NCBI RefSeq assembly: GCF_964194025.1
Contig: NC_134478.1
Location: 5,704,001-5,768,000 of the forward strand
Source: Convolutriloba macropyga
Taxonomy: Eukaryota
DNA length: 64,000 bases
Direction: 5' to 3'
Position numbers and translations under genes: made by a program. Shown here in pieces: positions 8,268 through 36,093 of this stretch (its first letter is position 1; every line of letters starts with the position of its first letter). The notes under the pieces were generated by a model. The model had not been told where the DNA came from and ran no database searches. It worked only from the letters and a program-made list of their open reading frames with translations.

Positions 8268-8294
8268 AGGCCCTGGGTTCAATTCAATGTCCCC
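8268..8294 (-). other. 2A-like ribosome-skipping (StopGo) peptide motif GDIELNPGP
   Basis: Exact D(V/I)ExNPGP consensus preceded by LMLS, immediately upstream of the APE domain. Confidence 0.85.
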
Positions 8295-10278: not shown

Positions 10279-10484
10279 ATGAAGTTATCATGGATCTGCG
10301 ATTTCTACCAGAACAAAGACTGTCGCAAGGGTCCCAAATGTACGCGACTGCACATCTGTGCCAATTTTTTATCTAAAGAGTGCGGCGATGAATCCAGGTG
10401 TGGTCTGAATCATCAACTGTCGCCCAAAGATGCAAGCATGCTTTCGAGTCAGGGTGTGAATGTTAACAGTGTACACGTTTTCAG
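10279..10484 (+). CDS. Exon 1 of PARP12/ZC3HAV1(ZAP)-like zinc finger CCCH-WWE-PARP gene: two CCCH fingers
   Basis: ATG at 10279; two C-x7-C-x5-C-x3-H fingers (CDFYQNKDCRKGPKCTRLH, CANFLSKECGDESRCGLNH); donor CAG|GTTAGT at 10485, phase 2, matching the acceptor at 36365. Confidence 0.82.
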
Positions 10485-11296
10485 GTTAGTCCTCCTACTT
10501 TCATGCCTCAGGATTTCGCCAATTGTCAAACGTTGCCACCATCTGTATGGAGATTAGATAGAAATGATAGTTTGTGATAACTAAGGCAGTTCTCAAGATA
10601 CAAAGCCAGTAGACACTCCAAAAAATAGCACCGGAAAGTTTTTTCAGCGTAGGGCTGTACCACATTGTATGCGCTTGAAAAATAATATTAAAGGTTGTAC
10701 TGTTAGATACATCCGGTCATAAGAAAATACGCCAATATACTTTGCCTTTTTCAGAGTGATATTAGATTTATCCAACTTTTACCTAGCTGTCAATCTGCAA
10801 TTGTTGCGAAACAATTGAGGAAACAGAAGGAATCTAAACATTCAGTTAAACAGTTAAGTTTCCCACAGAAGATCTGTTAATATAATTAATTGCTCTCGAA
10901 CGAAGTTCGATATATTATTGTGAACGTTGTGTGTCTTTTTACTGTGTACAAAATTTTTTCTTGACCGCTTCTAAAACGTTATTTTGATGTCACTTCTTAA
11001 TTTTTTTACGCTTGACTTTTCAATTTTTGTGGAATCTAAAATGCTTTTATACGGAATGTACGTCTGTTCCTAAAAGAAAGCAGATTGGAAGATCATTCAC
11101 AAGACCGTGATAACCCAGTGGTTAATGCTTCCCTCTGCTACACCGTAGGTCGCGGGTTCAAACGCCTACGGGTCGGAGTGTTTTGCATCCATAAAAAATA
11201 TCTAGGCTGATGCCTCCTCTGAATTAAATTGTCATTTGAGAGCAATTTTTCCCACGTTAAGAATAATATTACAGGTTGTACTGTTAGATACATCTG

Positions 11297-12263
11297 CCCA
11301 GGTCGAGGTGGCCAGACCGAAGTGACCCCTGATCAGACGAGTTTCGAGCGCACACATGTTCCCGGTGCGCTCGAATTACATGGTCTGGAAAAGGCTTCGA
11401 GCGCATTTTTGTCTGGAAAATGGTCTGGAACTTGCCTGATCAGAGGCCACTTTGTTCTGGGACGGTCTGATAAGAGGTCACTTTGGTCTGGGACGGTCTG
11501 ATCAGAGACAGTTTCAGGCGCGCACAAGTCTGATCAGAGGCCAATTCGAGCGCACACTAGTCTGACCAGAGACCAATTCGAGCGACATTTTTTTCAAGTT
11601 TTTTTTTGTTTTCTTACTGACTTTTGTTGTCTCGGTTAAGTGACAACAATAAAACAGCATTCTGATCGGAACTGCATCTGAAAATTTGATGGGTTTGATC
11701 AGAACCAAGGGGTCCAGCTGATAACAACTGCCGGTCCCCTCAAGAAAAGATTTTGAATCAAAGTAGATCAAGACGTTTTTATGCAGAGCTGTATAAGTTT
11801 ATTTTTTCAGTTAAAAGCATAAAAAAATGGCATACTCAGTAATTTTTTTTATCATTTTTTTTTTCGATTTACTTTCATTAACAATACTTTCAGGATTGGT
11901 TTTTTGTTAGTTGAATATAAGATTGATAAAATGATAGATGAAATGAATATATTATAACGATATTGAGAGATTTGTTCATGTTTAAAATCATTCTCTGATC
12001 AGACTATTTCGAACGCACTTTAGTCTGGACAATGGTCTGGAACTCGTCTGGACAATAGTCTGGACCTTGTCTGATCAGGGGTCACTTTGGTCTGGAAATC
12101 GCCTGATCAGAGGCGGCTTCGAGCGCACTTCGAGCGCACAATGATCTTCGAGCGCATTCTTGTCTGATCAGAGGTTACTTCGGTCTGGGACGGTCTGATC
12201 AGAGGTCTCACTTGTCTGGGATGGTCTGATCAGAGGCGATTTCGAGCGCGACCTCAACCTGGG
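11297..12263. mobile_element. Non-autonomous CACTA/EnSpm-like DNA transposon (967 bp) inserted in the satellite
   Basis: TIR CCCAGGTCGAGGT / ACCTCAACCTGGG (12 of 13 match); 2-bp TSD TG restoring catcTGgtca; many subterminal TCTGATCAGA, TCTGG and TTCGAGCGC motifs around an AT-rich core. Confidence 0.85.
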
Positions 12264-12295
12264 TGGTCACAAGAAAATACGCCAATATAATTTGC

Positions 12296-12796
12296 TTTTT
12301 AATAGCCGCGAAGCGATAGCTGAGCCTATAAGTGGCCTTCTCTTGGTTTTTTTTATTTTGTCGTCACGATTTTTGTTACGACCATATGACGTCACAACCA
12401 CTTCAGATCTGCTTTGTGCGTGATGAATTGCGTGCGCGATGTCATTTTTTACTCATAGTGGAGCTGGTTTTTTTGTTCATTCGCCTGATTAAATTTTTGG
12501 TCACACGTGACTTACCTCACTCTTAAAAATAACTTTTGCACTCTGAATTTGACTTTTCTTTACTTTAAATCAGAGATAAGGTAAATGAGTGCTTGTCACT
12601 CTAATTGAAGGTTATTTAAGAGCAGCTAATGGAAAAAGCAGTAAGTTATACAGATTCTTAATCAAAATTTAGCATCTCAGCCCCCTAATGAAAAGAATAA
12701 GTTTCTTTTTTTTTGGTCTGTCTTTTGTACCTTCTTTTTAAGATTACAGATCTATGAAGCTATTGCGGCTATTTTCTGGCATTTGCCAGCTATGTT
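12296..12796 (+). mobile_element. Non-autonomous Helentron/Helitron2-like element (HINE/DINE-type) inserted in the satellite
   Basis: 5' T run plus AATAGCCGC (12301), 3' GCGGCTATT (12765), then hairpin CTGGCA-tt-TGCCAG and CTATGTT; inserted in the T run of tttgcctttctcag without an evident TSD. Confidence 0.72.
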
Positions 12797-15700
12797 CTCA
12801 GAGTGTTATTAGATTTTTCCAACTGCTACCTAGCTGTCAATCTTCACTTGTCGAGAAACAATTGAGGAAACAGAAGGAATCTAAACTTTCAGTTAAGTTG
12901 CCCACAGAAGATCTATTAATGTACTTAATTGCTCTCGAAGTTCAAAAAGATTTTTGAAAAAGTGTGCCTTTTTTACTGCAAAATTTTTCTTGACCGCTTT
13001 CTTCTAGAACGTTATTTTGATTTCACTTCTCCGTAACTTTTTCACGCTTGACTTTTTGATTGTTGAGTAATTTAAGTAACTCTTATACAGAAAGCACATT
13101 TTCCTAAGAGAAAGCAGATTGTGAGATTAACATTCACAAGACCCTGACAACCAAGTGGTTAATGCTTCCCTCTCCTACACCGTAGGTCGCGGGTTCAAAT
13201 GCCTCCAGGTCGTAGGTTTTTGCACCCATAAAAATTATCGAGGCTAATGCCCCCCTCTGAATTAATTTGTCATTTGAGTGCAGTTTTAACCACGTTATGA
13301 ATGATATTAAAAGTTGTACTGTTAGATGCATCTCGTCATAAGAGAATACGCCAATTTACTTTGCCTTTCTCAGGGTGATATTATATTTATCCAGCTAGTT
13401 TCTAGCTGTCAGTCTTCACGTGTCGCGAAACGATTGATTCAAGAGTGATATTATATTTATCCAACTGTTACCTAGCTATCAATCTTCACTTGTTGAGAAA
13501 CAATTGAGTAAACAGAAGGAATCTAAACATTCAGTTAAGTTGCCCACAGAAGATCTGTTAATGTACTTAATTGCTCTCCAACGCAATTCGAAAAAATTAT
13601 TGAAAACGAATGTGCCTTTTTACTGCAAATTTTATTCTTGACCCTTTTCTTCTAAAACGTTATTTTGATATCACTTCTCCGTAACTTTTTTACGCTTGAC
13701 TTTGATTTTTGCGTAATTTAAATAAATTTTATACAGAAAGTACATCTGTCCCTAAAAGAAAGCAAATTGGAAGATCAACATTCACAAGACCCTGATAACC
13801 CAGTGGTTAATGCTTCCCTCTGCTACACCGTAGGTCGCGGGTTCAAACGCCTACGGGTCGGAGTGTTTTGCATCCATAAAAAATATCTAGGCTGATGCCT
13901 CCTCTGAATTAAATTGTCATTTGAGAGCAATTTTCCCTCTTTAAAATAATATGAAAGGTTGTTTTGGTAGATACATCTGGTCATAAGAAAATACGCCAAT
14001 ATACTTAGCCGTTCTCAGAGTGATATTAGATTGTTCCAACTGTTACCTAGCTGTCAATCTTCACTTTTCGCTAAACAATTGAGGAAACAGAAGTAATCTA
14101 AACATTCAGTTAAGTTGCCCACAGAAGATCTGTTAATCTACTTAATTCGTCTTGAACGAAATTCCAAAAAATTGTTGTAAACGTATATGTCTTTTTACTG
14201 CAAAATTTTTTCTTGACCGCTTTCTTCTAAAATGTTTTTGATTTCACTTCTCCGGAACTTTTTACGCTTGACTTTTCGATTACTGCGTAATTTGAATTGC
14301 TCTTATACAGAAAGTACATCTGTTCCTAAAAGGAAGCAGATTTGAGGATCAACATTCACAAGACCCTGACAACCGAGTGGTTAATGCTTCCCTCTTCTAC
14401 ACCATAGGTCGCGGGTTCAAATGCCTCCATGTCGTAGGTTTTTGCACACATAAAAAATTATTGAGGCTAATGACCCCTCTGAATTAATTTGTCAATTGAA
14501 TTCATTTTTTTTCCACGTTATAGGTAATATTAGAAGTTGTACTGTTAGATGCATCTGGTCATAGGATAATACGCCAATATACTTTGCCTTTTCAAGAATG
14601 ATATTATATTTATCCAGCTTTTACCTAGCTATCAATCTTCACTTGTTGGGAAACAATTGAGTGAACATAAGGAATCTAAACTTTCAGTTAAGTTGCCCAC
14701 AGAAGATCTGTTAATGTACTTAATTGCTCTCGAACGAAGTTTGAAAAAATTAATGAAAACATATGTGCCTTTTTACTGCAAAATGTATTCTTGACCCTTT
14801 TCTTCTAAAACGTTATTTTGATTTCACTTTTCCGTAACTTTTTTACGCTTGACTTTTTGATTTTTGCGTAATTTAAGTAAATTTTATACAGAAAGTACAT
14901 CTGTCCCTAAAAGAAAGCAGATTGGAAGATCAACATTCACAAGACCCTGATAACCGAGTAGTTAATGCTTCCCTCTTCTACACCGTAGGTCGTGGATTCA
15001 AAAACCTACGGGTCGGAGGTTTTTGCAACCAAAAAATTATCTAGGCTAATGCCCCCTCTGAAATAAATTTCATTTGAGAGCAATTTTTCCCACGTAAAAA
15101 TAATATTAGAGGTTGTACTGTTAGATACATCTGGTCATATGAAGATGCTTCAATATACTTTGCCTTTCTCAGAGTATGTTAGATTTATCGAACTAGTTTC
15201 TAGCTGTCAATCTTCACGTGTCGCGAAACGTTTGAGGAAACAGAAGGAATCTGAACATTCAGTTAATTTGCCCACATCAGATCTGTTAATGTACTTAATT
15301 GCTCTCAAACGAAGTTCGAAAAAATTATTGTAAACCTGTCTTTTTAGTGCAAAAATTTTTTTTGACCGCTTTCTTCTAAAACGTTCTTTCGATTTCACTT
15401 CTCCGTAACTTTTTTACGCTTGACTTTTTGATTTTTGCGTAATTTAAATAAATTTTATACAGAAAGTACATCGGTCCCTCAAAGAAAGCAGATTGGAAGA
15501 TCAACATTTACAAGAACCTGATAACCGAGTGGTTAATGCTTCCCTCTTCTACACCGTAGGTCGTGGATTCAAACGCCTACGGGTCGGAGATTTTTGCAAC
15601 CAAAAATTATCTAGGCTAATGCCCCCTCTGAATTAAATTTCAATTGAGAGCAATTTTTCCCACGTAAAAATAATATTAGAGGTTGTACTGTTAGATACAT

Positions 15701-17214
15701 CTGGTCATATGAAGATGCGCCAATATACTTTGCTTTTCTCAGAGTATGTTAGATTTATCCAACTAGTTTCTAGCTGTCAATCTTCACGTGTCGCGAAACG
15801 TTCGAGGAAACAGAAGGAATCTGACCATTCAGTTAATTTGCCCACATAAGATCTGTTAATGTACTTAATTGCTCTCAACGATTTTCGAAAAAATTATTGT
15901 AAACCTGTGTCTTTTTAGTGCACAAATTTTTCTTGACCGCTTTCTTCTAAAACGTTCTGTCGATTTAACTTCTACGTAATTTTTTTACGCTTGAGTTTTC
16001 AATTTTTGCGTAATTTGAATTGCTCTTATACAGAAACTACATCTGTTCCTAAAAGAAAGCAGATTGGAAGATCAACATTCACAAGACCCTGACAACTGAG
16101 TGGTTAATGCTTCCCTCTCCTATACCGTAGGTCGCGGGTTCAAACGCCTACGGGTCGGAGGTTTGTGCACCCAAAAAATTATCTAGGTTAATGACCCCTC
16201 TGAATTCAATTTCATTTGAGAGCAATTTTTCCCACGTTAAGAATATTAAAGGTTGTACTGTTAGATACATCTGGTCGTACGTAGCCTTTCTCAGAGTGCA
16301 ATTAGATTTATCCAATTGTTAGCTAGCTGCCAATCTTCACTTCTCGCAAAACAATTGAGGAAACAGAAGTAATCTAAACATTCAGTTAATTTGCCCCTAG
16401 AAGATCTGTTTATGTACCTAATTTGTCTCAAACGAAGTTCCAAAAAATTACTGTAAACGTATAATTTTTTACTGCAAAATTTTGTCTTGACCGCTTTCTT
16501 CTAAAACGTTTTTTTTATTTCACATCTCCGTAACTTTTTTACGCTTGACTTCTCGATTTTTGCGTAATTTAAATTGCTCTTGTGCAGAAAGTACCTCTGT
16601 TTCTAAAAGAAAGCAGATTGGAGGATCAACATTCACAAGACCCTGGCAACCGAGTGGTTAATGCTTCCCTCTCCTACACCGTTGGTCGCGGGATCAAACG
16701 CCTATAGGTCGAAGGTTTTTGCACCCATAGAAAATTATGTAGGCTTTTGCTCCCTCTGCTTAAAATTGTCATTTGAAAGCAATATTTCCCTCTTTAAAAT
16801 AATATGAAAGGTTGTATTGGTAGATACATCTGGTCATAACAAAATACGCCAATATACTTAGCCTTACTCAGAGTGATATTAGATTCATCCAACTGTTACC
16901 TAGCTGTCAATCTTCACTTGTCTCGAAACAATTGAAGAAACAGAAGTAATCTTAACATCCAGTTATGTTGCCCACAGAAGATCTGTTAATGTACTTAATT
17001 GCTCTCGAACGAAGTTCGAAAAAATTATTGTAAACCTGTGTCTTTTTAGTGCAAAATTTTTTCTTGAACGCTTTCTTGTAAAATGTTATTTTGATTTCAC
17101 TTCTCCGTAACTTTTTTACGCTTGACTTTTCAATTTTTGCGTAATTTGAATTGCTCTTATACCGAAAGTACATCTGTTGTAAAAGTAAGCAGATTGGAAG
17201 ATCAACATTCACAA

Positions 17215-17286
17215 GACCCTGACAACCGAGTGGTTATTGCTTCCCTCTCCTACACCGTAGGTCGCGGGTTCAAACGCCTACGGGTC
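17215..17286 (+). ncRNA. Representative 72-nt tRNA-like/SINE-head Pol III unit (one per monomer); not a canonical tRNA
   Basis: GACCC...GGGTC terminal stem; A-box-like AACCGAGTGGTT; B-box-like GGGTTCAAAC at tRNA spacing; TTTTT at 17292-17296; D, anticodon and T stems pair poorly. Confidence 0.6.
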
Positions 17287-20200
17287 GGAGGTTTTTGCAC
17301 CCAAAAAATTAACTAGGCTAATGCCCCCTCTGATTTAAATTGTCATTTGAGAGCAATTTTTCCCACGTTAAGAATAATATTAAAGGTTGTACTGTTAGAT
17401 GCATCTGGTCATAAAAAATGCGCGCCAATATACTTTGACTTTCTCAGAGTGATATTAGATTTATCCAACTAGTTTCTAGCTGTCAGTCTTCACGTGTCGC
17501 GAAGCGATTGAGGAAACAGGAATCTAATCATTCAGTTAATTTGCCCACATAATATCTGTTAATGTACTTAATTGCTCTCGAAAGAAGTTCGAAAAAATTA
17601 TTGTAAACCTGTGTCTCTTTAGTGCAAAATTTTTAATTGACCGCTTTCTTGTAAAATGTTATTTTGATTTCATTTCTCCGTAACTTTTTTACGCTTGACT
17701 TTTCAATTTTTGCGTAATTTGAATTGCTCTTATACAGAAAGTACATCTGCTCCTAAAAGAAAGCAGATTGGAAGATCAACATTCACAAAACCCAGACAAC
17801 CGAGTGGTGAACGCTTCTCTCTCCTACACCGTAGGTCGCGGTTTCAAAGGCCTACGGGTCAGAGGTTTTTGCACCCAAAAAATTATCTAGTCTAATGCCC
17901 CTCTGAGTTAAATTGTCATTTGAGAGCAGTTTTTCCCACGTTAAGAATAATATTAAAGGTTGTACTGTTAGATACATCTGGTCATACTTAGTCTTTCTCA
18001 GAGTGCTATTAGATTTATCCAACTGATAGCTTGCTGCCAATCTTCACTTCTCGCGAAACAATTGAGGAAACAGAAGTAATCTAAACATTCAGTTAAGTTG
18101 CCCACAGAAGATCTGTTAATGTACTTAATTGGTCTCGAACGAAGTTCCAAAACATTATTGTAAACGTATGTCTTTTAACTGCAAAATTTTTTCTTGGCAG
18201 CTTTCTTCTAAAATGTTTTTTATTTCACTTCTCCGTAACTTTTTTACGCTTGACTTCTCGTTTTTTGCGTAATTTAAATTGCTCTTGTGCAGAAAGTACA
18301 TCTGTTCCTAAAAGAAAGCAGATTTGAGGATCAACATTCACAAGGCCCTGACAACCGAGTGGTTAATGCTTCCCTCTCCTACACCGTTGGTCGCGGGATC
18401 AAACGCCTGTAGGTTGAAGGTTTTCGCACCCATAAAAAATTATCTGGGCGATTGCCCCCTCCTATTTAAATTGTCATTTGAGAGCAATATTCCCTCTTTA
18501 AAATAATATGAATGGTTGTATTGGTAGATACATCTGGTCATAAGAAAATACGCCAATATACTTAGCCTTTCTCAGAGTGATATTAGATTCTTCCAACTGT
18601 TACATAGCTGTCAATCTTCACTTGTCGCTAAACAATTGAGGAAACAGAATCAATCCTAACATTCAGTTAAAATGCCCACAGAAGATCTGTTAATGTACTT
18701 AATTGGTCTCTAACGAAGTTCCAAAAAATTGTTGTAAACGCATGTGTCTTTCTACTGCAAAATTTTTTTCTTTGACCGCTTTCCTCTAATATTTTTGATT
18801 TCACTTCTCCGTAACATTTTTACGCTTGACTTTTTGGTTTTTGCGTGATTTGAAAAGCTCTTATACGGAAAGTACATCTGTTCTTTAAAGAAAGGAGATT
18901 GGAAGATCAACATTCGCAAAACCCTGATAACTGAGTGGTTAATGCCTCCCTCTCCTACACCGTAGGTCGCGGGTTCAAACGCCTACAGGTCGGAGGTTTT
19001 TGCACCCATAAAAATTTATATAGGCTAATGCCCCCTCTGAATTAAATTTTCATTTGGATTCAATTTTTTCCACGTTATAAATAATATTAAAAGTTGTACT
19101 GTTAGATGCATCTGGTCATATAAAAATGCGCCAATATACTTTGCCTTTGTCAGAGTGATATTAGATTTATTCAACTAGTTTCTAGCTGTCAGACTTCACG
19201 TGTCGCGAAACGATTGAGGAAACAGAAAGAATCTAAACATTCAGTTAATTTGCCCACATAATATCTGTCAATGTACTTAATTGGTCTCGAACGAAGTTCC
19301 AAAACATTATTGTAAACGTATGTCTTTTTACTGCAAATTTTTTCTTGACCGCTTTCTTCTAAAACGTTTTTTTGATTTCACTTCTCCGTAACTTTTTTAC
19401 GCTTGACTTCTCGATTTTTGCATAATTTAAATTGCTCTTGTGCAGAAAGTACATCTGTTCCTAAAAGAAAGCAGATTTGAGGATCAACATTCACAAGACC
19501 CTGACAACCGAGTGGTTAATGCTTCCCTCTCTTACACCGTTGGTCGTGGGATCAAGCGCCTGTAGGTCGAAGGTTTTTGCACCCATAAAAAATTATCTAG
19601 GCGATTGCCCCCTCTTATTTGAATTGTCATTTGAGAACAATATTCCCTCTTTAAAATAATATGAATGGTTGTATTGGTAGATACATCTGGTCATAAGAAA
19701 ATACGCCAATATACTTAGCCTTTCTCAGAGTGATATTAGATTCTTCCAACTGTTTCCTAGCTGTCAATCTTCACTTGTCGCTAAACAATTGAGGAAACAG
19801 AAGTAATCTTAACATTCAGTTAAGATGCCCACAGAAGATCTGTTAATGTACTTAATTGGTCTTGAAGGAAGTTCCAAAAAATTGTTGTAAACGTATGTGT
19901 CTTTTTACTGCAAAATTTTTCCTTGACCGCTTTCCTCTAATATTTTTGATTTCACTTCTCCGTAACATTTTTACGCTTGACTTTTCGGTTTTTGCGTGAT
20001 TTGAATAGCTCTTATACGGAAAGTACATCTGTTCTTTAAAGAAAGGAGATTGGAAGATCAACATTCGCAAAACCCTGATAAGCGAGTGGTTAATGCTACC
20101 TTCCCCTACACCGTAGGTCGCGGGTTCAAACGCCTACAGGTTGGAGGTTTTTGCACCCGTAAAAAATTATATAGGCTAATGCCCCCTCTGAATTAAATTG

Positions 20201-23200
20201 TCATTTGGATTCAATTTTTTCCACGTTATAAATAATATTTAAAGTTGTACTGTTAGATGCATCTGGTCATAAGAAAATGCGCCAATATACTTTGCCTTTG
20301 TCAGAGTGGTATTAGATTTATTCAACTAGTTTCTAGCTGTCAATCTTCACTTGTCGCTAAACAATTGAGGAAACAGAAGGAATCTAAACATTCAGTTAAT
20401 TTGCCCACATAATATCTGTCAATGTACTTAATTGGTCTCGAACCAAGTTCCAAAACATTATTGTAAACGTATGTCTTTTTACTGCAAATTTTTTCTTGAC
20501 CGTTTTCTTCTAAAACGTTTTTTTGATTTCACTTCTCCGTAACCTTTTTACGCTTGACTTCTCGATTTTTGCATAATTTAAATTGCTCTTGTGCAGAAAG
20601 TACATCTGTTCCTAAAAAAAAGCAGATTTGAGGATCAACATTCACAAGACCCTGGCAACCGAGTGGTTAATGCTTCCCTCTCGTAAACCGTAGGTCGCTG
20701 GATCAAACACCTATAGGTCGAAGGTTTTTGCACCCATAAAAAATTATCTAGGCTATTGCGCCCTCTTATTTAAATTGTCATTTGAGAGCAATTTTCCCTC
20801 TTTAATTTAATATGAAAGGTTGTATTGGTAGATACATCTGGTCATAAGAAAATACGCCAATATACTTAGCCTTTCTCACAGTGATGTTAGATTCTTCCAA
20901 CTGTTACCTAGCTGCCAATCTTCACTTCTCGCGAAACAATTGAGGAAACAGAAGTAACTTAAACATTCAGTTATGTTGCCCACAGAAGATCTTTTAATGT
21001 ACTTAATTGGTCTCGAACGAAGTTCCAAAACATTATTGTAAACGTATGTCTTTTTACTGCAAATTTTTTTCTTGACAGCTTTCTTCTAAAACGTTTTTTT
21101 GATTTCACTTCTCCGTAACTTTTACGCTTGACTTCTCGATTTTTGCATAATTTAAATTGCTCTTGTGCAGAAAGTACATCTGTTCCTAAAAGAAAGCAGA
21201 TTTGAGGATCAACATTAACAAGACCCTGGCAACCGAGTGGTTAATGCTTCCCTCTCCTACACCGTAGGTCGCTGGATCAAACGCCTATAGGTCGAAGGTT
21301 TTTGCACCCATAAAAAATTATCTAGGCTATTGCCCCCTCTTATTTAAATTGTCATTTGAGAGCAATATTCCCTCTTTAAAATAATATGAAAGTTTGTATT
21401 GGTAGATACATCTGGTCATAAGCAAATACACCAATATGCTTAGCCTTTCTCAGAGTGATATTAGATTCTTCCAACTGTTACCTAGCTGTCAATCTTCACT
21501 TGTCGCTAAACAGTTGAGGAAACAGAAGTAATCTTAACATTCAGTTAAGTTGCTCACAGAGGATCTGTTAATGTACCTAATTGGTCTTGAAGGAAGTTCC
21601 AAAAAAAGGTTGTAAACGTATGTGTCTTTTTACTGCAAAATTTCTCCTTGACCGCTTTCCTCTAAAATGTTTTTGATTTCACTTCTCCGTAACGTTTTTA
21701 CGCTTGACTTTTCGATTTTTGTGTAATCTAAATAGCTCTTATACAGAAAGTACATCAGTTCCTAAAAGAAAGCAGATAGCTAGGTAAACATTCACAAGAC
21801 CCTGGAAACCGAGTGGTTAATGCTTCCCTCTCCTACACCGTAGGTCGCAGGTTCAAACGCCTAGGGATCGGAGGTTTTTGCACCCATAAAAAATTATTTA
21901 GGCTATTCCCCCTCTCATTTAAATTGTCATTTGAGAGCAATATTCCCTCTTTAAAATAATATGAAAGGTTTTATTGGTAGATGCATCTGGTCATAAAAAA
22001 TATGCCTATATACTTAGCCTTTCTCAGAGTGATGTTAGATTCTTCCAACTGTTACCTAGCTGCCAATCTTCACTTCTCGCGAAACAATTGAGGAAACAGA
22101 AGTAATCTAAACATTCAGTTATGTTGCCCACAGAAGATCTGTTAATGTACTTAACTGGTCTCGAACGAAGTTCCAAAACATTATTGTAAACGTATGTCTT
22201 TTTACTGCAAAATTTTTCCTTGACCGCTTTCCTCTAAATTGTTTTTGATTTCACTTCTCCGTAACTTTTTACGCTTGACTTTTCGGTTTTTGCGTAATTT
22301 GAATAGCTCTTATACGGAAAGTACATCTGTTCTTTGAAGAAAGGAGATTGGAAGATCAACATTCGCAAAACCCTGATAAGCGAGTGGTTAATGCTACCTT
22401 CTCCTACACCGTAGGTTGCAGGTTCAAACGCCTACAGGTTGGAGGTTTTTGCACCCGTAAAAAATTATATAGGCTTATGCCCCCTCTGAATTAAATTGTC
22501 ATTTGGGTTCAATTTTTTCCACCTTATAAATAATATTAAAAGTTGTACTGTTAGATGCATCTGGTCATAAGAAAATGCGCCAATATACTTTGCCTTTCTC
22601 AGGGTGATATTATATTTATCCAGCTAGTTTCTAGCTGTCAGTCTTCACGTGTCGCGAAACGATTGAGGAAACAGAGGGAATCTAAACATTCAGTTAATTT
22701 GCCAACATAATATCTGTCAATGTAATTAATTGGTCTTGAAGGAAGTTCCAAAAAATTGTTGTAAACGTATGTGTCTTTTTACTGCAAAATTTTTCCTTGA
22801 CCGCTTTCCTCTAAAATGTTCTTTGATTTCACTTCTCCGTATTTTTTTAAGCTTGACTTTCCGATTTTTGCGTAATTGAAATATTGCTCTTGTACAGAAA
22901 GTACATCTGTTCCTAAAAGGAAGCAGATTTGAGGATCAACATTCACAAGACCCTGACAACCGAGTGGTTAATGCTTCCCTCTCCTACACCGTAGGTCGCG
23001 GTGTCAAACGCCTGTAGGTCGAAGGTTTTTGCACCCATAAAAAATTATCTAGGCTATTGCCCCCTCTTATTTAAATTGTCATTTGAGAGCAATATTCCCT
23101 CTTTAAAATAATATGAAAGGTTGTTTTGGTAGATACATCTGGTCATAAGAAAATACGCCAATATACTTAGCCTTTCTCAGAGTGATATTAGATTGTTCCA

Positions 23201-26200
23201 ACTGTTACCTAGCTGTCAATCTTCACTTTTCGCTAAACAATTGAGGAAACAGAAGTAATCTAAACATTCAGTTAAGTTGCCCACAGAAAATCTGTTAATC
23301 TACTTAATTCGTCTTGAACGAATATCCAAAAAATTGTTGTAAACGTATATGTCTTTTTACTGCAAAATTTTTTCTTGACCGCTTTCTTCTAAAATGTTTT
23401 TGATTTCACTTCTCCGGAACTTTTTACGCTTGACTTTTCGATTACTGCGTAATTTGAATTGCTCTTATACAGAAAGTACATCTGTTCCTAAAAGGAAGCA
23501 GATTTGAGGATCAACATTCACAAGACCCTGACAACCGAGTGGTTAATGCTTCCCTCTCTACACCGTAGGTCGCGCTGGCAAACGCCTGTAGGTCGAAGGT
23601 TTTTGCACCCTTAAAAAATTTTCTAGGCTATTGCCGCCTCTGAATTAAATCGTCATTTTAGAGCAATTGTTTCCTCATTAAAAATAATATGAAAGTTTGT
23701 ATTGGTAGATACAGCTGGTCATAAGAGAATACGCCAATATACTCAGCCCTTCTCATAGTGATATTAGATTTATCCAACTGTTACCTAGCTGTCAATCTTC
23801 ACTTGTCGCGAAACGATTGCGGAAACAGGAATCTAAACATTCAGTTTCACAGTAAAGTTGCCCGTAGAAGATCTGCTAATATACCTAATTTCTCTCGAAC
23901 GAAGTTCGAGAAAATATTGTAAATGTGTGTTTTTTACTGCAATATTTTTTCTTGAGCGCTTTTTTCTAAAATGTTCTTTGATTTCACTTCTCCGCATTTT
24001 TTTACGCTTGACTTTCCGGTTTCTGCGTAATTGAAATATTGCTCTTGTACAGAAAGTACATCTGTTCCTAAAAGGAAGCAGATTGGAGGATCAACATTCA
24101 CAAGACCCTGACAACCGAGTGGTTAATGCTTCCCTCTCTACACCGTAGGTCGCGGTGGCAAACGCCTGTAGGTCGAAGGTTTTTGCACCCATAAAAAATT
24201 TTCTAGGCTATTGCCGCCTCTGAATTAAATCGTCATTTTAGAGCAATTTTTCCCTCATTATAAATAATATGAAAGGTTGTATTGGTAGATACATCTAGTC
24301 ATAAGAGAATACGCCAATGTACCTAGCCTTTCTGATAGTGATATTAGATTTATCCAACTGTTACCTAGCTGTCAATCTTCACTTGTCGCGAAACGATAGA
24401 GGAAACAGGAGGAATCTAAACATTCAGTTTCACAGTTAAGTTGCACGTAGAAGATCTCCTAATGTACTCAATTTCTCTCTAACGAAGTTCGAAAAGAATA
24501 TTGTAAATGTGTGTTTTTACTGCAAAATTTTTTCTTGAGCGCTTTTTACTAAAAATGTTATTTTGATTTCACTTCTCCGTATTTTTTTTACGCTTGGTTT
24601 TTCGATTTTTGCGTAATTTAAATAGCTCTTATACAGAAAGTACATCTGTTCCTAAAAGAAAACAGATTGGAAGATCAACATTCACAAGACCCTGATAACC
24701 GAGTGGTTAATGCTTCCCTCTCCTACACCGTAGGTCGCGCTGGCAAACGCCTGTAGGTCGAAGGTTTTTGCACCCTTAAAAAATTTTCTAGGCTATTGCC
24801 GCCTCTGAATTAAATCGTCATTTTAGAGCAATTGTTTCCTCATTAAAAATAATATGAAAGTTTGTATTGGTAGATACAGCTGGTCATAAGAGAATACGCC
24901 AATATACTCAGCCCTTCTCATAGTGATATTAGATTTATCCAACTGTTACCTAGCTGTCAATCTTCACTTGTCGCGAAACGATTGCGGAAACAAAAGGAAT
25001 CTAAACATTCAGTTGCACAGCTAAATTGCCCGTAGAGTATCTGCTAACATACTTAATTTCTCTCAAACGAAGTTCAAAAATATATTGTAAATGTGTGTTT
25101 TTTACTGCAAAATTTCTTGACCGCTTTCTTCTAAGAATGTTATTTTAATTTCACTTCTCCGTAATTTTTTTACGCTTGACTTTTCGATTTTTGCGTAATT
25201 TAAATAGCTCTTATACGGAAAGTACATCAGTTCCTAAAAGGAAGCAGATTTGAGGATCAACATTCACAAGACCCTGACAACCGAGTGGTTAATGCTTCCC
25301 TCTCCTACACCGTATGTCACGGGATCAAACACCTATAGTCGAAGGTTTTTGTACCCATAAAAATTTACCTAAGATAATGCCCCCTCTGAATTAAATCGTC
25401 ATTTGAGAGCAATTTTTCCCTAATTAAAAATAATATGAAAGGTTGTATTGGTAGATACATCTAGTCATAAGAGCATACGCCAATGTACCTAGCCTTTCTG
25501 ATAGTGATATTAGATTTATCCAACTGTTACCTAGCTGTCAATCTTCACTTGTCGCGAAACGATAGAGGAAACAGGAGGAATCTAAACATTCAGTTTCACA
25601 GTTAAGTTGCACGTAGAAGATCTCCTAATGTACTCAATTTCTCTCTAACGAAGTTCGAAAAGAATATTGTAAATGTGTGTTTTTACTGCAAAATTTTTTC
25701 TTGAGCGCTTTTTACTAAAAATGTTATTTTGATTTCACTTCTCCGTATTTTTTTTACGCTTGGTTTTTCGATTTTTGCGTAATTTAAATAGCTCTTATAC
25801 AGAAAGTACATCTGTTCCTAAAAGAAAACAGATTGGAAGATCAACATTCACAAGACCCTGATAACCGAGTGGTTAATGCTTCCCTCTCCTACACCGTAGG
25901 TCGCGCTGGCAAACGCCTGTAGGTCGAAGGTTTTTGCACCCTTAAAAAATTTTCTAGGCTATTGCCGCCTCTGAATTAAATCGTCATTTTAGAGCAATTG
26001 TTTCCTCATTAAAAATAATATGAAAGTTTGTATTGGTAGATACAGCTGGTCATAAGAGAATACGCCATTATACTCAGCCCTTCTCATAGTGATATTAGAT
26101 TTATCCAACTGTTACCTAGCTGTCAATCTTCACTTGTCGCGAAACGATTGCGGAAACAAAAGGAATCTAAACATTCAGTTGCACAGCTAAATTGCCCGTA

Positions 26201-29200
26201 GAGTATCTGCTAACATACTTAATTTCTCTCAAACGAAGTTCAAAAATATATTGTAAATGTGTGTTTTTTACTGCAAAATTTTTTCTTGACCGCTTTCTTC
26301 TAAAAATGTTATTTTAATTTCACTTCTCCGTAATTTTTTTACGCTTGACTTTTCGATTTTTGCGTAATTTAAATAGCTCTTATACGGAAAGTACATCAGT
26401 TCCTAAAAGGAAGCAGATTTGAGGATCAACATTCACAAGACCCTGACAACCGAGTGGTTAATGCTTCCCTCTCCTACACCGTATGTCACGGGATCAAACA
26501 CCTATAGTCGAAGGTTTTTGTACCCATAAAAATTTACCTAAGATAATGCCCCCTCTGAATTAAATCGTCATTTGAGAGCAATTTTTCCCTAATTAAAAAT
26601 AATATGAAAGGTTGTATTGGTAGATACATCTGGTCATAAGAGAATACGCCAATATACTCAGCCCTTCTCATAGTGATATTAGATTTATCCAACTGTTACC
26701 TAGCTGTCAATCTTCACTTGTCGCGAAACGATTGCGGAAACAAAAGGAATCTAAACTTTCAGTTTCACAGTAAAGTTGCCCGTAGAAGATCTGCTAATAT
26801 ACCTAATTTCTCTCGAACGAAGTTCGAGAAAATATTGTAAATGTGTGTTTTTTACTGCAATATTTTTTCTTGAGCGCTTTTTTCTAAAATGTTCTTTGAT
26901 TTCACTTCTCCGCATTTTTTTACGCTTGACTTACCGGTTTCTGCGTAATTGAAATATTGCTCTTGTACAGAAAGTACATCTGTTCCTAAAAGGAAGCAGA
27001 TTGGAGGATCAACATTCACAAGACCCTGACAACCGAGTGGTTAATGCTTCTCTCTCTACACCGTAGGTCGCGGTGGCAAACGCCTGTATGTCGAAGGTTT
27101 TTGCACCCATAAAAAATTTTCTAGGCTATTGCCGCCTCTGAATTAAATCGTCATTTTAGAGCAATTTTTCCCTCATTATAAATAATATGAAAGGTTGTAT
27201 TGGTAGATACATCTAGTCATAAGAGAATACGCCAATGTACCTAGCCTTTCTGATAGTGATATTAGATTTATCCAACTGTTACCTAGCTGTCAATCTTCAC
27301 TTGTCGCGAAACGATAGAGGAAACAGGAGGAATCTAAACATTCAGTTTCACAGTTAAGTTGCACGTAGAAGATCTCCTAATGTACTCAATTTCTCTCTAA
27401 CGAAGTTCGAAAAGAATATTGTAAATGTGTGTTTTTACTGCAAAATTTTTTCTTGAGCGCTTTTTACTAAAAATGTTATTTTGATTTCACTTCTCCGTAA
27501 TTTTTTTACGCTTGGTTTTTCGATTTTTGCGTAATTTAAATAGCTCTTATACAGAAAGTACATCTGTTCCTAAAAGAAAACAGATTGGAAGATCAACATT
27601 CACAAGACCCTGATAACCGAGTGGTTAATGCTTCCCTCTCCTACACCGTAGGTCGCAGGTTCAAACGCCTACAGATCGGAGGTTTTTGCACTCAAAAAAT
27701 TATCTAGGCTAATGCTCCCTCAGAATTAAATTGTCATTTCAGAGCAGTTTTTCCCACGTTAAGAATAATATTGAAGGTTGTACTGTTATATACATCTGGT
27801 CATACTTAGCCTTTATCAGAGTGCTATTAGATTTGTCCAACTGTTAGCTGGCTGCCAATCTTCACTTCTCGCGAAACAATTTAAGAAACAGAAGTAATCT
27901 GAACATTCAGTTAAGTTTCCCACAGAAGATCTGTTAATGTACTTAATTGGTCTCGAACGAAGTTCCAAAAAATTATTGTAAACGTATGTCTTTTACTGCA
28001 AAATTTTTTCTTGACCGCTTTCTTCTAAAACGCTTTTTGATTTCTTTTCTCCGTATCTTTTTTACGCTTGACTTCTCGATTTTTGCGTAATTTAAATTGC
28101 TCTTGTGCAGAAAGTACATCTGTTCCTAAAAGAAAGCAGATTAGAGGATCAAAATTCACAACACCTTGACAACCGAGTGGTTAACGCTTCCCTCTCCTAC
28201 ACCGTATGTCACGGGATCAAACACCTATAGTCGAAGGTTTTTGTACCCATAAAAATTTACCTAAGATAATGCCCCCTCTGAATTAAATCGTCATTTGAGA
28301 GCAATTTTTCCCTAATTAAAAATAATATGAAAGGTTGTATTGGTAGATACATCTGGTCATAAGAGAATACGCCAATATACTCAGCCTTTCTCATAGTGAT
28401 ATTAGATTTATCCAACTGTTACCTAGCTGTCAATCTTCACTTGTTGCGAAACGATTGAGGAAACAAAAGGAATCTAAACATTCAGTTGCACAGCTAAATT
28501 GCCCGTAGAGTATCTGCTAACATACTTAATTTCTCTCAAACGAAGTTCAAAAATATATTGTAAATGTGTGTTTTTTACTGCAAAATTTTTTCTTGACCGC
28601 TTTCTTCTAAAAATGTTATTTTAATTTCACTTCTCCGTAATTTTTTTACGCTTGACTTTTCGATTTTTGCGTAATTTAAATAGCTCTTATACGGAAAGTA
28701 CATCAGTTCCTAAAAAAAAGCAGATTTGAAGGTCAACATTTACAAGACCTTGACAACGGAGTGGTTATTGCTTCCCTCTCCTACACCGTAGGTCGCGGGA
28801 TCAAACGCCAACGGGTCGGAGGTTTTTGCACCCATAAAAATTTATCTAGGCTAATGCCCCTTCTGAATTAAGTTGTCGTTTAGGCAATTTTTCCCACTTT
28901 AAAATTAATATTAAAGGTAATACTCTTAGATACATTTGGTCATAAGAAAATGCGGCAATATACTTTGTCTTTCTCAGAGTGATATTAGATTTATCCAACT
29001 GTTACCTAGCTGTCAATCTTCACTTGTTGCGAAACGATTGAGGAAACAAAAGGAATCTAAACATTCAGTTGCACAGCTAAATTGCCCGTAGAGTATCTGC
29101 TAACATACTTAATTTCTCTCAAACGAAGTTCAAAAATATATTGTAAATGTGTGTTTTTTACTGCAAAATTTTTTCTTGACAGCTTTCTTCTAAAAATGTT

Positions 29201-32200
29201 ATTTTAATTTCACTTCTCCGTAATTTTTTTACGCTTGACTTTTCGATTTTTGCGTAATTTAAATAGCTCTTATACGGAAAGTACATCAGTTCCTAAAAAA
29301 AAGCAGATTTGAAGGTCAACATTTACAAGACCTTTACAACGGAGTGGTTATTGCTTCCCTCTCCTACACCGTAGGTCGCGGGATCAAACGCCAACGGGTC
29401 GGAGGTTTTTGCACCCATAAAAATTTATCTAGGCTAATGCCCCTTCTGAATTAAGTTGTCGTTTAGGCAATTTTTCCCACTTTAAAATTAATATTAAAGG
29501 TAATACTCTTAGATACATTTGGTCATAAGAAAATGCGGCAATATACTTTGTCTTTCTCAGAGTGATATTAGATTTATCCAACTGTTACCTAGCTGTCAAT
29601 CTTCACTTGTCGCGAAACAATTGAGTAAACAAGGAATCTAAGCATTCAGTTTCGCAGTCAAGTTGCACACACAGGATCTGTTAATATACTTAATTGCTCT
29701 CGAACGAAGTTCGAAAAAATTCTGGTAAACTTTTGCGTTTTTTGCAAAATTTTATCTTGACCGCTTTCTTCTAAATTTTTATTTTGATTTCACTTCTCCG
29801 TAATATTTTTACGCTTGATTTTTCGGTTTTTGCGTAATTTAAATGGCTCTTATACAGAAATAACATCTGTTTCTAAAAGAAAGCAGATTGGAAGATGAAC
29901 ATTCACAAAACCCTGATAACCGAATGGTTAATGTTTCCCTCTTCTACACCATAGGTCGCGGGTTCAAATGCCTCCATGTCGTAGGTTTTTGCACACATAA
30001 AAAATTATTGAGGCTAATGCCCCTTCTGAATTAAGTTGTCGTTTAGGCAATTTTTCCCACTTTAAAATTAATATTAAAGGTAATACTCTTAGATACATTT
30101 GGTCATAAGAAAATGCGGCAATATACTTTGTCTTTCTCAGAGTGATATTAGATTTATCCAACTGTTACCTAGCTGTCAATCTTCACTTGTTGCGAAACGA
30201 TTGAGGAAACAAAAGGAATCTAAACATTCAGTTGCACAGCTAAATTGCCCGTAGAGTATCTGCTAACATACTTAATTTCTCTCAAACGAAGTTCAAAAAT
30301 ATATTGTAAATGTGTGTTTTTTACTGCAAAATTTTTTCTTGACAGCTTTCTTCTAAAAATGTTATTTTAATTTCACTTCTCCGTAATTTTTTTACGCTTG
30401 ACTTTTCGATTTTTGCGTAATTTAAATAGCTCTTATACGGAAAGTACATCAGTTCCTAAAAAAAAGCAGATTTGAAGGTCAACATTTACAAGACCTTGAC
30501 AACGGAGTGGTTATTGCTTCCCTCTCCTACACCGTAGGTCGCGGGATCAAACGCCAACGGGTCGGAGGTTTTTGCACCCATAAAAATTTATCTAGGCTAA
30601 TGCCCCTTCTGAATTAAGTTGTCGTTTAGGCAATTTTTCCCACTTTAAAATTAATATTAAAGGTAATACTCTTAGATACATTTGGTCATAAGAAAATGCG
30701 GCAATATACTTTGTCTTTCTCAGAGTGATATTAGATTTATCCAACTGTTACCTAGCTGTCAATCTTCACTTGTCGCGAAACAATTGAGTAAACAAGGAAT
30801 CTAAGCATTCAGTTTCGCAGTCAAGTTGCACACACAGGATCTGTTAATATACTTAATTGCTCTCGAACGAAGTTCGAAAAAATTCTGGTAAACTTTTGCG
30901 TTTTTTGCAAAATTTTATCTTGACCGCTTTCTTCTAAATTTTTATTTTGATTTCACTTCTCCGTAATATTTTTACGCTTGATTTTTCGGTTTTTGCGTAA
31001 TTTAAATGGCTCTTATACAGAAATAACATCTGTTTCTAAAAGAAAGCAGATTGGAAGATGAACATTCACAAAACCCTGATAACCGAATGGTTAATGTTTC
31101 CCTCTTCTACACCGTGGGTCGCGGGTTCAAATGGCTATGTGTCGGAGGCTTTTGCACGCATAAGAAATATCTAGTCTTATGCACTCTCTGAATTAAATTG
31201 TCTTTTCAGAGCACTTCTTCCCTCGTTAAAAATAATATTAAAGGTGGTAGTGTTAGATACATCTGTTCATGAGAAAATACGCCAATATGCTTTGCCTTTC
31301 TCAGAGTGATATTAGATTTATTCAACTGTTACCTAGCTGTCAATCTTCACTTTTCGCGAAACAATTGAGGAAACATAAGGAACCTAAACTATCAGTTTCA
31401 CAGTTAAGTTGCCTGTAGAAGATCTGCTAATATACTTAATTTCTCTCAAACGAAGTTCGAAAAAAATATTGTAAATGTGTGTTTTTTACTGCACAATTTT
31501 TTCTTGACCGCTTTCTTCTAAAATGTTATTTTGATTTCGCTTTTCCGTAATTTTTTTACTCTTGACTTTTCGATTTTTGCGTAATTTAAATAGCTATTAT
31601 ACGGAAAGTACATCATTTCCTAAAAAAACAGATTTGAAGGTCAACATTTACAAGACCTTGACAACGGAGTGGTTAATGCTTCCTCTCCTACACCGTAGGT
31701 CGCGGGATCAAACGCCTACGGGTCGGAGGTTTTTGCACCCATAAAAATTTATCTAGCCTAATGCCCCCTCTGAATTAAATTGTCGTTTAGGCAATTTTTC
31801 CCACGTTAAAATTAATATTAAAGGTAATAATCTTAGATACATTTGGTCATAAGAAAATACGGCAATATACTTTGCCTTTCTCAGAAAGATATAAGATTTA
31901 TTCAACTGTTACCTAGCTGTCAATCTTCATTTTTCGCGAAACAATTGAGGAAACATAAGGAATCAAAGCATTCAGTTTCGCAGTTAATTGCACACAGAGG
32001 ATCTGTTAATATACTTGATTGCTCTCGAACGAAGTTCGAAAAAATTCTGGTAAACGTGTGCGTTTTTTTATTGCAAAATTTTTTCTTGACCGCGTTCTTC
32101 TAAATTTTTATATTGATTTCACTTCTGCGTAATTTTTTTACGCTTGACATTTCGGTTTTTGCGTAATTTAAATGGCTCTTATACAGAAAGAACATCTGTT

Positions 32201-34982
32201 TCTAAAAGAAAGCAGATTGGAAGATGAATATTCACAAATCCCTGATAACCGAATGGTTGTTTCCCTCTTCTACACCTTGGGTCGCGGGTTCAAATGCCTA
32301 TGGGTTGGAGGCTTTTGCACCCATAAAAAATATCTAGTCTTATGCACCCTCTGAATTAAATTGTGTTTTCAGAGCACTTTTTCCCTCGTTAAAAATAATA
32401 TTAAAGGTTGTAGTGTTAGATACATCTGTTCATAAGAAAATGCGCCAATATGCTTTGCCTTTCTCAGAGTGATATTAGATTTATTCAACTGTTACCTAGC
32501 TGTCAATCTTCACTTTTCGCGAAACAATTGAGGAAACAAAAGGAATCTAAACATTCAGTTTCACAGTTAAGTTGACTGTAGAAGATCTGCTAATATACTT
32601 AATTTCTCTGGAACGAAGTTCGGAAAAATTGTAGTAAATGTGTGTGTTTTTTACTGCACAATTTTTTCTTGAACGCTTTCTTCTAAAATGTTATTTTGAT
32701 TTCACTTCTCCGTAATTTTTTTACGCTTGACTTTTCGATTTTTGTGTTATCTAAATAGCTCTTATACAGAAAGTACATCAGTTCCTAAAAGAAAGCAGAT
32801 AGGAAGGTCAACATTCACAAGACCCTGGAAACCGAGTGGTTAATGCTTCCTTCTCCTACACCGTAATTCGCGGGATCAAACGCCTACGGGTCGGAGGTTT
32901 TTGCACCCAAAAAAAACTATCTAGGCTAATGCCCCCTCTGAATTAAATGTCATTTGAGAAATTTTTCCCACGTTAAAATTAATGTTAAATTTTGTAATGT
33001 TAGATACATCTGTTCAAAAGAAAATACGGCAATATACTTAGCCTTTCTCAGAGTGATATTAGATATATTCAACTGTTACCTAGCTGTCAATCTTCACTTT
33101 TCGCGAAACAATTGAGGAAACAAAAGGAATCTAAACATTCAGTTTCACAGTTAAGTTGACTGTAGAAGATCTGCTAATATACTTAATTTCTCTGGAACGA
33201 AGTTCGGAAAAATTGTAGTAAATGTGTGTGTTTTTTACTGCACAATTTTTTCTTGAACGCTTTCTTCTAAAATGTTATTTTGATTTCACTTCTCCGTAAT
33301 TTTTTTACGCTTGACTTTTCGATTTTTGTGTTATCTAAATAGCTCTTATACAGAAACTACATCTGTTCCTAAAAGAAAGCAGATTGGAAGATCAACATTC
33401 ACAAGACCCTGACAACCGAGTGGTTAATGCTTCCTTCTTCTACACCGTAAGTCGCGGGATCAAAAGACTACGGGTCGGAGGTTTTTGCACCCATAAAAAA
33501 TTATCTTGGCTAATGCCCCCTCTGAATTAAATTGTCATTTGAGAAATTTTTCCCACGTTAAAATTAATATTAAATGTTGTAATGTTAGATACATCTGTTC
33601 ATAAGAAAATACGCCAATATGCTTTGCCTTTCTCAGAGTGATATTAGATTTTTTCAGCTGTTACCTAGCTGTCAATCTTCACTTTTCGCGAAACAATTCA
33701 GGAAACATAAGGAATCTAAACATTCAGTTTCACAGTTAAGTTGACTGTAGAAGATCTGCTAATATACTTAATTTCTCTGGAACGAAGTTCGGAAAAAATG
33801 TTGTAAATGTGTGTGTTTTTAACTGCCCAATTTTTTCTTGACCGCTTTCTTCTAAAATGTTATTTTGATTTCACTTCTCCGTAATATTTTTACGCTTGAC
33901 TTTTCGATTTTTGTGTAATCTAAATAGCTCCTATACAGAAAGTACATCAGTTCCTGAAAGAATGCAGATAGGAAGGTAAACATTCACAAGACCCTGGAAA
34001 CCGAGTGATTAATGCTTCCTTCTCCTACACCGTAGGTCGCGGGATCAAACGCCTACGGGTCGGAGGTTTTTGCACCCATAAAAAATTATCTAGGCTAATG
34101 CCCCCTCTGAATTAAATTGTCATTTGAGAAATTTTTCCCACGTTAAAATTAATATTAAATGTTGTAATGTTAGATACATCTGTTCATAAGAAAATACGGC
34201 AATATACTTAGCCTTTCTCAGAGTGATATTAGATTTATTCAACTGTTACCTAGATGTCAATCTTCACTTTTCGCGAAACAATTGAGGAAACATAAGGAAT
34301 CTAAACTTTCAGTTTCACAGTTAAGTTGCCCGTAGAAGATCTGCTAATATACTTAATTTCTCTCGAACGAAGTTTGGAAAAAATATTGTAAATGTGTGTT
34401 TTTTACTGCACAATTTTTTCTTGACCGCTTTCTTCTAAAATGTTATTTTGATTTCACTTCTCCGTAATTTTTTTACGCTTGACTTCTCGATTTTTGCGCA
34501 ATTTAAATTGCTCTTGTGCAGAAAGTACATCTGTTCCTAAAAGAAAGCAGATAGGAAGGTCAACATTCAGAAGACCCTGGAAACCGAGTGGTTAATGCTT
34601 CCTTCTAATATTAAATGTTGTAATGTTAGATACATCTGTTCATAAGAAAATCCGGCAATATACTTAGCCTTTCTCAGATTGATATTAGATTTATCCAACT
34701 GTTACCTAGGTGTCAATCTTCACTTGTCGCGAAACAATTGAGGAAACAGAAGGAATCTAAACATTCAGTTAAACAGTTAAGTTGCCCCCAGAAGATCTGT
34801 TAATATACTTAATTGTTCTCGAACGAAGTTCGAAAAATTATTGTAAACGTGTGTCTTTTTGCTGCAAAATTTTTTCTTAAGACCCATAGAACTTAGTGCA
34901 ATGAAGTTCATAAGTAGCTGTACATTTGATTGAGCTTATTGGCCTGTACCAGCTCATTGGAAAGGTGCATTCACTTCCATTG

Positions 34983-36093
34983 TTAATAGCCTTGTCAGCA
35001 ATTGCAAGCGGCTATTATAGTGCTCCTAATTTTTTTACAATTCAATGAATTTGAATTGTATTGGTGTGTTGTCTTTTTTTCAATATCTATTCACACATTT
35101 TAATGATTTTTGAAGTCAAATTGGATTCGTGATTTTGGTCACGCTGATACAATACTGGAGCGAAAAAGCGAGTGGTTTTGCGGCGTGAAATTTTTTTGCT
35201 CTAAATTTAAAGTAGAGTGACAAAACGGTATTTGAACAAAAATCCGCTTTCTCGCTAGTGGTTTTTTGTTCACATGCGGCAATTTGACTTTGATTTTTAC
35301 TGTTTTTTCAATTTTTTGGATCGGATTTTTTTTTCTAAATTGTTTTCCCAATCTATGCATAGTTCATTCTAGGCCTAGTTTTTTGGTTTGAAACAAATTT
35401 CCTTTTCTCGCTGATGGTTTTCTGTTTACATGCGGCATTTTGACATTGATATTCTGTATTTTTTTAGTTTTTTATCTGATTTTTTATAATGGTTTTCCCA
35501 ATTCACTCATAGTCCGTAATAGGTCTAGTTTTTTTGTTTGGTCAATGAAATTTCTTTGAATTGTACGTCAGGACTTGTCCTGCTATGTTTTTTTACTTCG
35601 TCTGGCAGATTTTTGTTTTGTCTTACCCTGACTTTTTGGAGTTGACTTTTTCAATGACTTCAGTGACTTCTACTGCTTTGCAGTTAAAGTTTTTGTTCGT
35701 GACGTCATTTCTGCTTTTAGGTCAATTGCGTGACTTTTCTCACTAAAAAATGATTTCTGAACTTTTTTATGGAACTTTAAATTTTATGAACATTTACTAA
35801 TTAAAGGTCAATAGTGTGCATCTAAGTATATATTTATATGCCCTAATTCCTGAGCAATAGAGTCTTGAGTTTTAATATCGAATAATAATTTTGAAAAAGC
35901 TGCATTAGGCCTTTTTCCTTGTAGAGCAAATGTGTCTCGTAAAAATGACAGTCCTAATCAAATCCAAAAAGTCTAGTGGTCCATTAAAAAGCTGGTGGTC
36001 GATCTGTCAATCTTATTTCTTTAGTTGTTTCAATTCATGGTAGGCCACAAGTGTCTATCGCGGCTATTTTCCGACAATCTGCCGGCTATGTTT
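34983..36093 (+). mobile_element. Second Helentron-like non-autonomous element, related family
   Basis: 5' TTAATAGCC...GCGGCTATT palindrome; 3' GCGGCTATTTT plus hairpin CCGACA-atc-TGCCGG plus CTATGTTT, the same architecture as 12296-12796. Confidence 0.62.

Follow-up and report, generated by a model that had tools for sequence, protein, structure and literature searches.

A 24-kb tandem array of tRNA-like units in the intron of a PARP12-like gene of Convolutriloba macropyga: probably a decaying, near locus-private macrosatellite

A and B boxes at tRNA spacing are found in tandem arrays of tRNA genes and in tRNA-derived short interspersed elements (SINEs), the latter being dispersed and having tails and target-site duplications. 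Euchromatic low-copy satellites and macrosatellites made from pieces of mobile elements lie in or near genes (reviews: PMC10048060, PMC12628747), and satellites inside mussel HSP70 introns are cited in PMC7492417. In bivalves, tandem repeats are carried by non-autonomous transposons (pearl, DTC84 and the Cg_HINE Helentron derivatives; PMC3879986, PMC7492417), of which DTC84 and pearl have no complete A and B boxes (PMC3879986, PMC7492417). Cassandra, a terminal-repeat retrotransposon in miniature (TRIM), forms tandem arrays whose 5S-derived long terminal repeats (LTRs) bear RNA polymerase III (Pol III) promoters (PMC7215508). The locus described here is a tandem array of ~580-bp monomers carrying a tRNA-like segment of 72 nt (the head). 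It lies within an intron of a PARP12-like gene of Convolutriloba macropyga (contig NC_134478.1, positions 5,704,001 to 5,768,000; this stretch of 64,000 nucleotides is the window, and all positions below are counted from its first letter). The array is probably a near locus-private macrosatellite built on a tRNA-derived or SINE-head-like relic and decaying neutrally in the intron.

The array (10678-34878, plus strand) consists of about 41.5 head-to-tail monomers of 554-587 bp with 39 tRNA-like heads, the last of which is shortened to 35 nt. The 19-nt core of the head has 30 matches at three mismatches or fewer, against 0 in 100 shuffles. BLAST with one 72-nt head retrieves 39 copies between 11102 and 34606, on the plus strand only and with a period of 553-587 bp. 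A 577-column monomer consensus covers the whole interval gap-free, except that the first full unit is split by two insertions and the last one lacks an internal piece. The original prediction, made from the letters of the window, was of a ~39-copy array of ~580-bp monomers at this place, all sense to the host gene; core count, BLAST and consensus tiling confirm the array, and the plus strand of all heads confirms the orientation. Outside the array, neither BLAST nor nhmmer profiles of the head and of the whole monomer give a match on either strand of the 64-kb window. The boundaries of the array are abrupt, without grading into the flanks. Tandem Repeats Finder (TRF), run on the window, did not list the array because its longest period, 500, is below the monomer length.

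The head was predicted to be the GC- and CpG-richest part of the monomer, and it is (GC 0.53-0.58 versus 0.22-0.47 in the rest). Its consensus has a D-loop-like GAGTGGTTAA and a T-loop-like GGTTCAAA, and also A-box-like and B-box-like motifs at tRNA spacing; like tRNA genes and SINEs, it is followed by a T run just 3′. This run, expected about 5 nt downstream, was found there (T4 or longer in 37 of 38 copies, T5 in 32 of 38); T runs are frequent throughout the AT-rich monomer. The oligo-T terminator of a type-2 Pol III unit is present, and an intact B box is not: the full pattern (GGTTCGANNCC-like) occurs in 0 of 38 heads, the core GTTCRA in 14 of 38, GGATCAA in 15 and TGGCAA or GTGTCAA in nine. 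The A box, at +8 to +19, is seen in a loose form (RRCNNAGTGG) in 31 of 38 heads and in its strict form (TRGCNNAGTGG) in none of the 38. Of 35 distinct copies, only 16 have a standard pair at the fifth acceptor position. The terminal stem and the A and B boxes that had been read from the sequence are accordingly features of the consensus, not of most copies.

No identity as an RNA gene was found for the heads. ARAGORN finds 0 tRNAs in the whole window and, with thresholds lowered to 85%, calls one head out of 38; its calls at 80% are scattered over both strands, do not coincide with the heads and were rejected as noise. No Rfam family reaches its gathering score anywhere in the window. With E up to 10, on the array and also on a single 121-nt head with the laxest filters, Rfam gives no tRNA and no other credible family, which is the outcome of the Rfam check that the original prediction had proposed for the monomers. 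Two matches, mir-4662 (E 9.8) and the Flavobacteria L19 leader (E 0.07, opposite strand), were rejected as due to chance. Five heads fold no better than their own shuffles (z from +0.07 to -1.67). In the 38-copy alignment A1, the terminal stem and the D-like hairpin have 2 pairs changed on both sides versus 1.6 in shuffles, and in the minimum-energy fold 0 pairs of the long hairpin are so changed, neither structure doing better than shuffles; most changes in these two candidate structures disrupt pairs. The heads show neither the cloverleaf of a tRNA gene, as judged by a tRNA finder or the Rfam tRNA model, nor the better-than-chance fold with compensatory changes of a structured non-coding RNA (ncRNA). 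Active tRNA genes are rejected on the ARAGORN, Rfam and B-box tests.

The head is not more conserved than the spacer. Columns of the head are on average 0.859 identical and the remaining 505 columns 0.851; among 72-column windows the head comes 257th of 577, and non-CpG substitutions per site per copy amount to 0.083 in the head versus 0.079 elsewhere. Within the head, identity is lowest in the B-box columns (0.80) and in the 3′ stem columns (0.73, both per ten columns). A head no better conserved than the spacer is what the original prediction had itself named as evidence against an array of RNA genes. Like the Cassandra arrays, the unit joins a spacer to a segment derived from a Pol III gene, with its internal promoter and terminator, and so mimics a Pol III gene array. 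Cassandra is a plant LTR element whose 5S promoters are conserved across species, whereas the promoter boxes of the present array are decaying and no structure of a retroelement is apparent.

The dynamics of the array are those of a satellite. Mean pairwise identity between monomers is 0.867. Neighbours at lag 2 are 0.904 identical versus 0.884 at lag 1, and 16 of 36 monomers are most similar to a monomer two places off: the array is made of discrete blocks with a dimer higher-order structure. The youngest pairs of monomers (24103/27021, 24687/25853 and 29328/30491) are 99.5-99.8% alike. The heads of these young duplicates have broken B boxes, so that recent amplification did not favour intact promoters. 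Block and dimer structure, young duplicates and the insertion of a MITE-like element (Table 1) are the usual behaviour of a tandem repeat under unequal exchange. The array has what satellites and macrosatellites are recognised by: non-coding units placed head to tail that are locally homogenised or form higher-order repeats. The array is like the euchromatic satellites in having non-coding units of a few hundred bp arranged head to tail, a block or higher-order structure due to local duplication, an intronic position and an unconstrained unit. It is unlike them in that its unit is long (~580 bp), includes a tRNA-derived segment and a terminator-like T run, and seems confined to about one locus by depth.

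Genomic abundance was estimated from summed word depth, a rough measure and not a true copy number, in runs X4 and X1. Both are DNA-like runs of the same organism, whose contigs pass the donor site of the host intron unspliced and in two alleles. Monomer bins average ~2,200 summed depth versus 33-61 for single-copy sequence, that is, ~37-67 copy equivalents at 85% likeness or more. This is about what the array alone supplies, and the head bin is no higher than the rest. An abundant satellite present at many unrelated loci, the other finding that would have spoken against the predicted RNA genes, is thus not what depth indicates, and a multi-locus satellite of this kind is rejected at ~37-67 times single copy; by this rough measure, the high abundance and many loci of a classical satellite are lacking. 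A dispersed SINE family is likewise rejected on the depth of the head, which is the same as in the remainder of the monomer. The dispersed copies, tails and target-site duplications that set SINEs apart were not found: no copy lies outside the array, either in the window or in L001, a contig with a homologous gene. In this respect, and in having heads without a cloverleaf that no tRNA finder or covariance model accepts (apart from the one ARAGORN call at 85%), the units are unlike tRNA genes and SINEs. The neutral SINE- or tRNA-derived satellite that had been offered as the alternative to RNA genes fits in its neutrality and derivation; by depth it looks near locus-private and not like an abundant repeat of many loci. 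One 54-bp bin (11212-11265) has a summed DNA depth about threefold higher than the other monomer bins, and in run X5, described below, most contigs that touch the monomer continue into unlike sequence. This short part of the monomer seems to occur also in a different repeat at some other place in the genome.

The array could instead be the cargo or product of a rolling-circle (Helitron- or Helentron-type) or other tandem-repeat-carrying non-autonomous transposon, the 3′-half hairpin of the head being a transposon end signal and not a tRNA relic. Bivalves are known to have carriers of this kind (PMC7492417, PMC3879986), which share with this locus satellite-like arrays in gene-rich DNA. The abrupt boundaries agree with this origin, as does an imperfect 7-9-bp inverted repeat followed by CTAG ~28 nt later in each unit. 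The distance and loop size of this hairpin are unlike those of canonical Helitron 3′ ends. Comparison of the two flanks of the array gave no termini, inverted repeats or common sequence above chance; simple comparisons, made without reference elements, found no Helitron or Helentron termini there (5′ TC, 3′ hairpin plus CTRR, or Helentron inverted ends). Bivalve carriers have short arrays, defined left and right modules and many copies; here the array measures 24 kb, no termini were found and the repeat is about single-locus, with no further copy in the 64 kb or in L001 and no sign of a dispersed family. A transposon carrier is therefore considered unlikely. It would touch only the origin of the array, is compatible with later neutral decay and leaves the functional verdict unchanged.

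The host gene was correctly predicted to be ZAP/PARP12-like. Pfam finds zf-CCCH_PARP12 (below its cut-off), WWE and PARP in its protein, and the long open reading frame (ORF) at 36358-38892 encodes the WWE and PARP catalytic domains. The best PDB matches are PARP12 catalytic domains (E 6e-19), followed by PARP15 and PARP14, and the ZAP central domain matches at E 6e-7. N-terminal CCCH fingers, WWE domains and a C-terminal PARP domain, as in PARP12/ZAP-like proteins, are all present. Run X5 behaves as a transcriptome: depth is 221 in the exon and ~12-23 in the flanks, with ~23 in the unique flank of the intron. One of its contigs departs from the window at 10487 and resumes at 36370 with letters that are unique in the window; three letters common to both sides of the junction place the end of the exon at 10484 and the start of the next at 36366, and the reading frame is kept. 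The array-bearing intron is hence spliced out. The array takes up 24,201 of its 25,881 bp (93.5%); it had been said to fill the intron, which holds for 24.2 kb of the 25.9 kb. At the AG at 10241-10242 this transcript continues 5′ into 26 letters that have no match in the window at two mismatches or fewer. This means one or more additional 5′ introns in the gene, unless a leader is added otherwise; the 26-letter piece could be a distant exon of the 5′ untranslated region, more than 10 kb upstream, or a trans-spliced leader. The description of the intron as single is correct for the coding sequence and not for the transcript. Ten linked single-base differences at 10498-10618 in runs X1, X4 and X5 correspond to two haplotypes of the unique 5′ part of the intron among the animals sampled.

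The nearest homologous locus has no array. A protein search with E below 1e-10 gives the gene itself and one homologue with 57% amino acid identity, on contig L001 of another ENA assembly. Positions 4157-12445 of L001 have the two-exon coding structure of the host gene: the homologue of exon 1 is 72% identical, lies ~5.6 kb 5′ of the large exon and shares the intron position. The L001 intron is 5.6 kb long and repeat-free, containing neither a tandem array nor any monomer or head-like sequence, so that inspection of the same intron in a relative, also proposed with the original prediction, gave a negative result. Pfam gives only a faint WWE match for the L001 protein. A further contig, L002, encodes an identical protein and is 100% identical to the window, and is not counted as independent. 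In metagenome contigs from JGI, exact searches for one pattern from the head and one from the spacer gave nothing, and a literature search found no paper on this repeat.

A subset of units (A-box-like motif, GTTCRA and T run) might nevertheless be live type-2 Pol III units producing a ~80-nt RNA other than a tRNA, or TFIIIC-binding sites resembling extra TFIIIC (ETC) sites, with a possible role as ligand, decoy, insulator or roadblock for the PARP gene. The consensus boxes at tRNA spacing followed by T5, the retention of the B-box core in 14 of 38 copies, the sense orientation of the units and the near locus-specificity of the array by depth are in keeping with this. On the other side stand the conservation of the head, which is not above that of the spacer and is poorest in the B box, the broken B boxes of recent duplicates, the lack of a fold, of covariation and of an RNA family match, and the absence of the array from the homologous intron of L001. 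The head is also not enriched in X5 (head bin 7.5, monomer 0-37 summed over copies, exon 221), although such libraries capture ~80-nt RNA poorly. Live Pol III units are for these reasons held to be very improbable. In a more specific version, units with an A-box-like motif, GTTCRA and T5 would recruit TFIIIC or Pol III inside an antiviral-type PARP gene's intron and yield a ~80-nt CpG-rich RNA open to binding by the CCCH fingers, or form a clustered ETC-like barrier tuning the gene; this too is held to be very improbable. If such recruitment were true, the private single-locus nature of the array would be meaningful. The original prediction had given equal weight to an ncRNA-gene array and to a neutral satellite. 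For the former, with its link between small structured Pol III ncRNAs and an RNA-sensing PARP, no support is found in family identity, fold, covariation, conservation, state of the B box, representation in X5 or presence in L001.

The neutrally decaying macrosatellite would have arisen as follows. The founder unit of ~580 bp would already have held a degenerate piece of tRNA origin, which was either a pseudogene of a tRNA together with its terminator or a relic resembling a SINE head. Its ancestry is possibly tRNA-Arg(CCT): the CCT ‘anticodon’ and the motifs resembling a D loop and a T loop are hints of descent from a tRNA-Arg or a SINE head. Replication slippage or unequal crossing-over would then have multiplied the unit head to tail within the intron, and segments of the array are still being duplicated. 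The array would be transcribed only within the host pre-mRNA and is then removed with the intron. The tRNA-like heads show no detectable constraint and decay as fast as the spacer. The link of the array to a PARP gene is probably coincidental. Several observations weigh against this account. The T run is kept in all copies but one and the loose A-box-like motif in 31 of 38; every unit is sense to the host gene; and the repeat seems nearly confined to the locus, unlike a purely selfish dispersed repeat. Ordinary RNA-seq contigs cannot rule out a 75-85-nt Pol III RNA from the 14 better-preserved units. As to the origin of the founder, the array ends abruptly, without recognisable transposon termini.

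Table 1. Features of the host gene and of the array. Positions are those of the window. +, forward strand;., no strand assigned; MITE, miniature inverted-repeat transposable element; T4+, run of at least four T; A1, 38-copy alignment of heads. The features are sorted according to the gene or array to which they belong.
Feature	Position	Strand	Evidence or remarks
Host exon with start codon at 10279 and PARP12-type CCCH fingers	10243..10484	+	Splice donor GT at 10485
Intron, 25,881 bp, holding the array	10485..36365	+	Transcript contig of run X5; AG at 36364-36365
Host exon with further CCCH fingers, WWE domains and PARP catalytic domain, to the stop codon	36366..38892	+	Pfam, PDB
Tandem array	10678..34878	+	Begins at monomer position 159, ends at position 428
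MITE-like insertion, 967 bp, in the first full monomer	11297..12263	.	Terminal inverted repeats of ~13 bp (CCCAGGTYGAGGT); apparent 2-bp TG duplication
Second insertion, 495 bp, in the same first full monomer	12300..12794	.	Monomer tiling
Representative 72-nt head, near consensus, with A-box-like and B-box-like motifs	17215..17286	+	Alignment A1; fold z-score -1.67; no tRNA call
T5 run, Pol III terminator-like, 5 nt 3′ of the representative head	17292..17296	+	T4+ in 37/38 and T5 in 32/38 copies
Sole head called by ARAGORN, as tRNA-Arg(CCT)	22369..22442	+	Only at thresholds lowered to 85%; weak clue to ancestry
Youngest block of the array	24103..27604	+	Lag-2 or lag-5 monomers 99.5-99.7% alike; heads with broken B boxes (TGGCAA or GGATCAA)

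Other repeats are found in the array and elsewhere in the window. The MITE-like insertion has internal 31-32-bp tandem repeats built around GTCTGATCAGAGG. The second insertion ends in the motif GCGGCTATTTTC ... GCTATGTT, which recurs near 36060 (36050-36100) in the unique part of the intron and probably marks where a dispersed repeat ends. Minus-strand ORFs of a non-LTR retrotransposon (endonuclease/reverse-transcriptase-like, 387 aa plus fragments) lie at 4800-9300, immediately 5′ of the PARP12-like gene. This region has an internal 482-bp tandem duplication (6262-7202), and a further duplication, of 322 bp, is found at 4045-4711. Two repeat copies ~4 kb apart (47781-48176 and 51789-52223) begin with the same ORF, and both run into masked stretches of N (47948-48121 and 51959-52152).

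The look-alikes of A box, B box and oligo-T in these repeat units are no evidence of Pol III genes, and no tRNA genes should be called in the array when the genome is annotated. The link to an RNA-sensing PARP would become of interest only if the few intact units prove to be bound by Pol III or TFIIIC. The locus is a case of a gene intron inflated about tenfold by a private tandem repeat, and a clean one for the decay of a tRNA-derived relic within an actively duplicating array.

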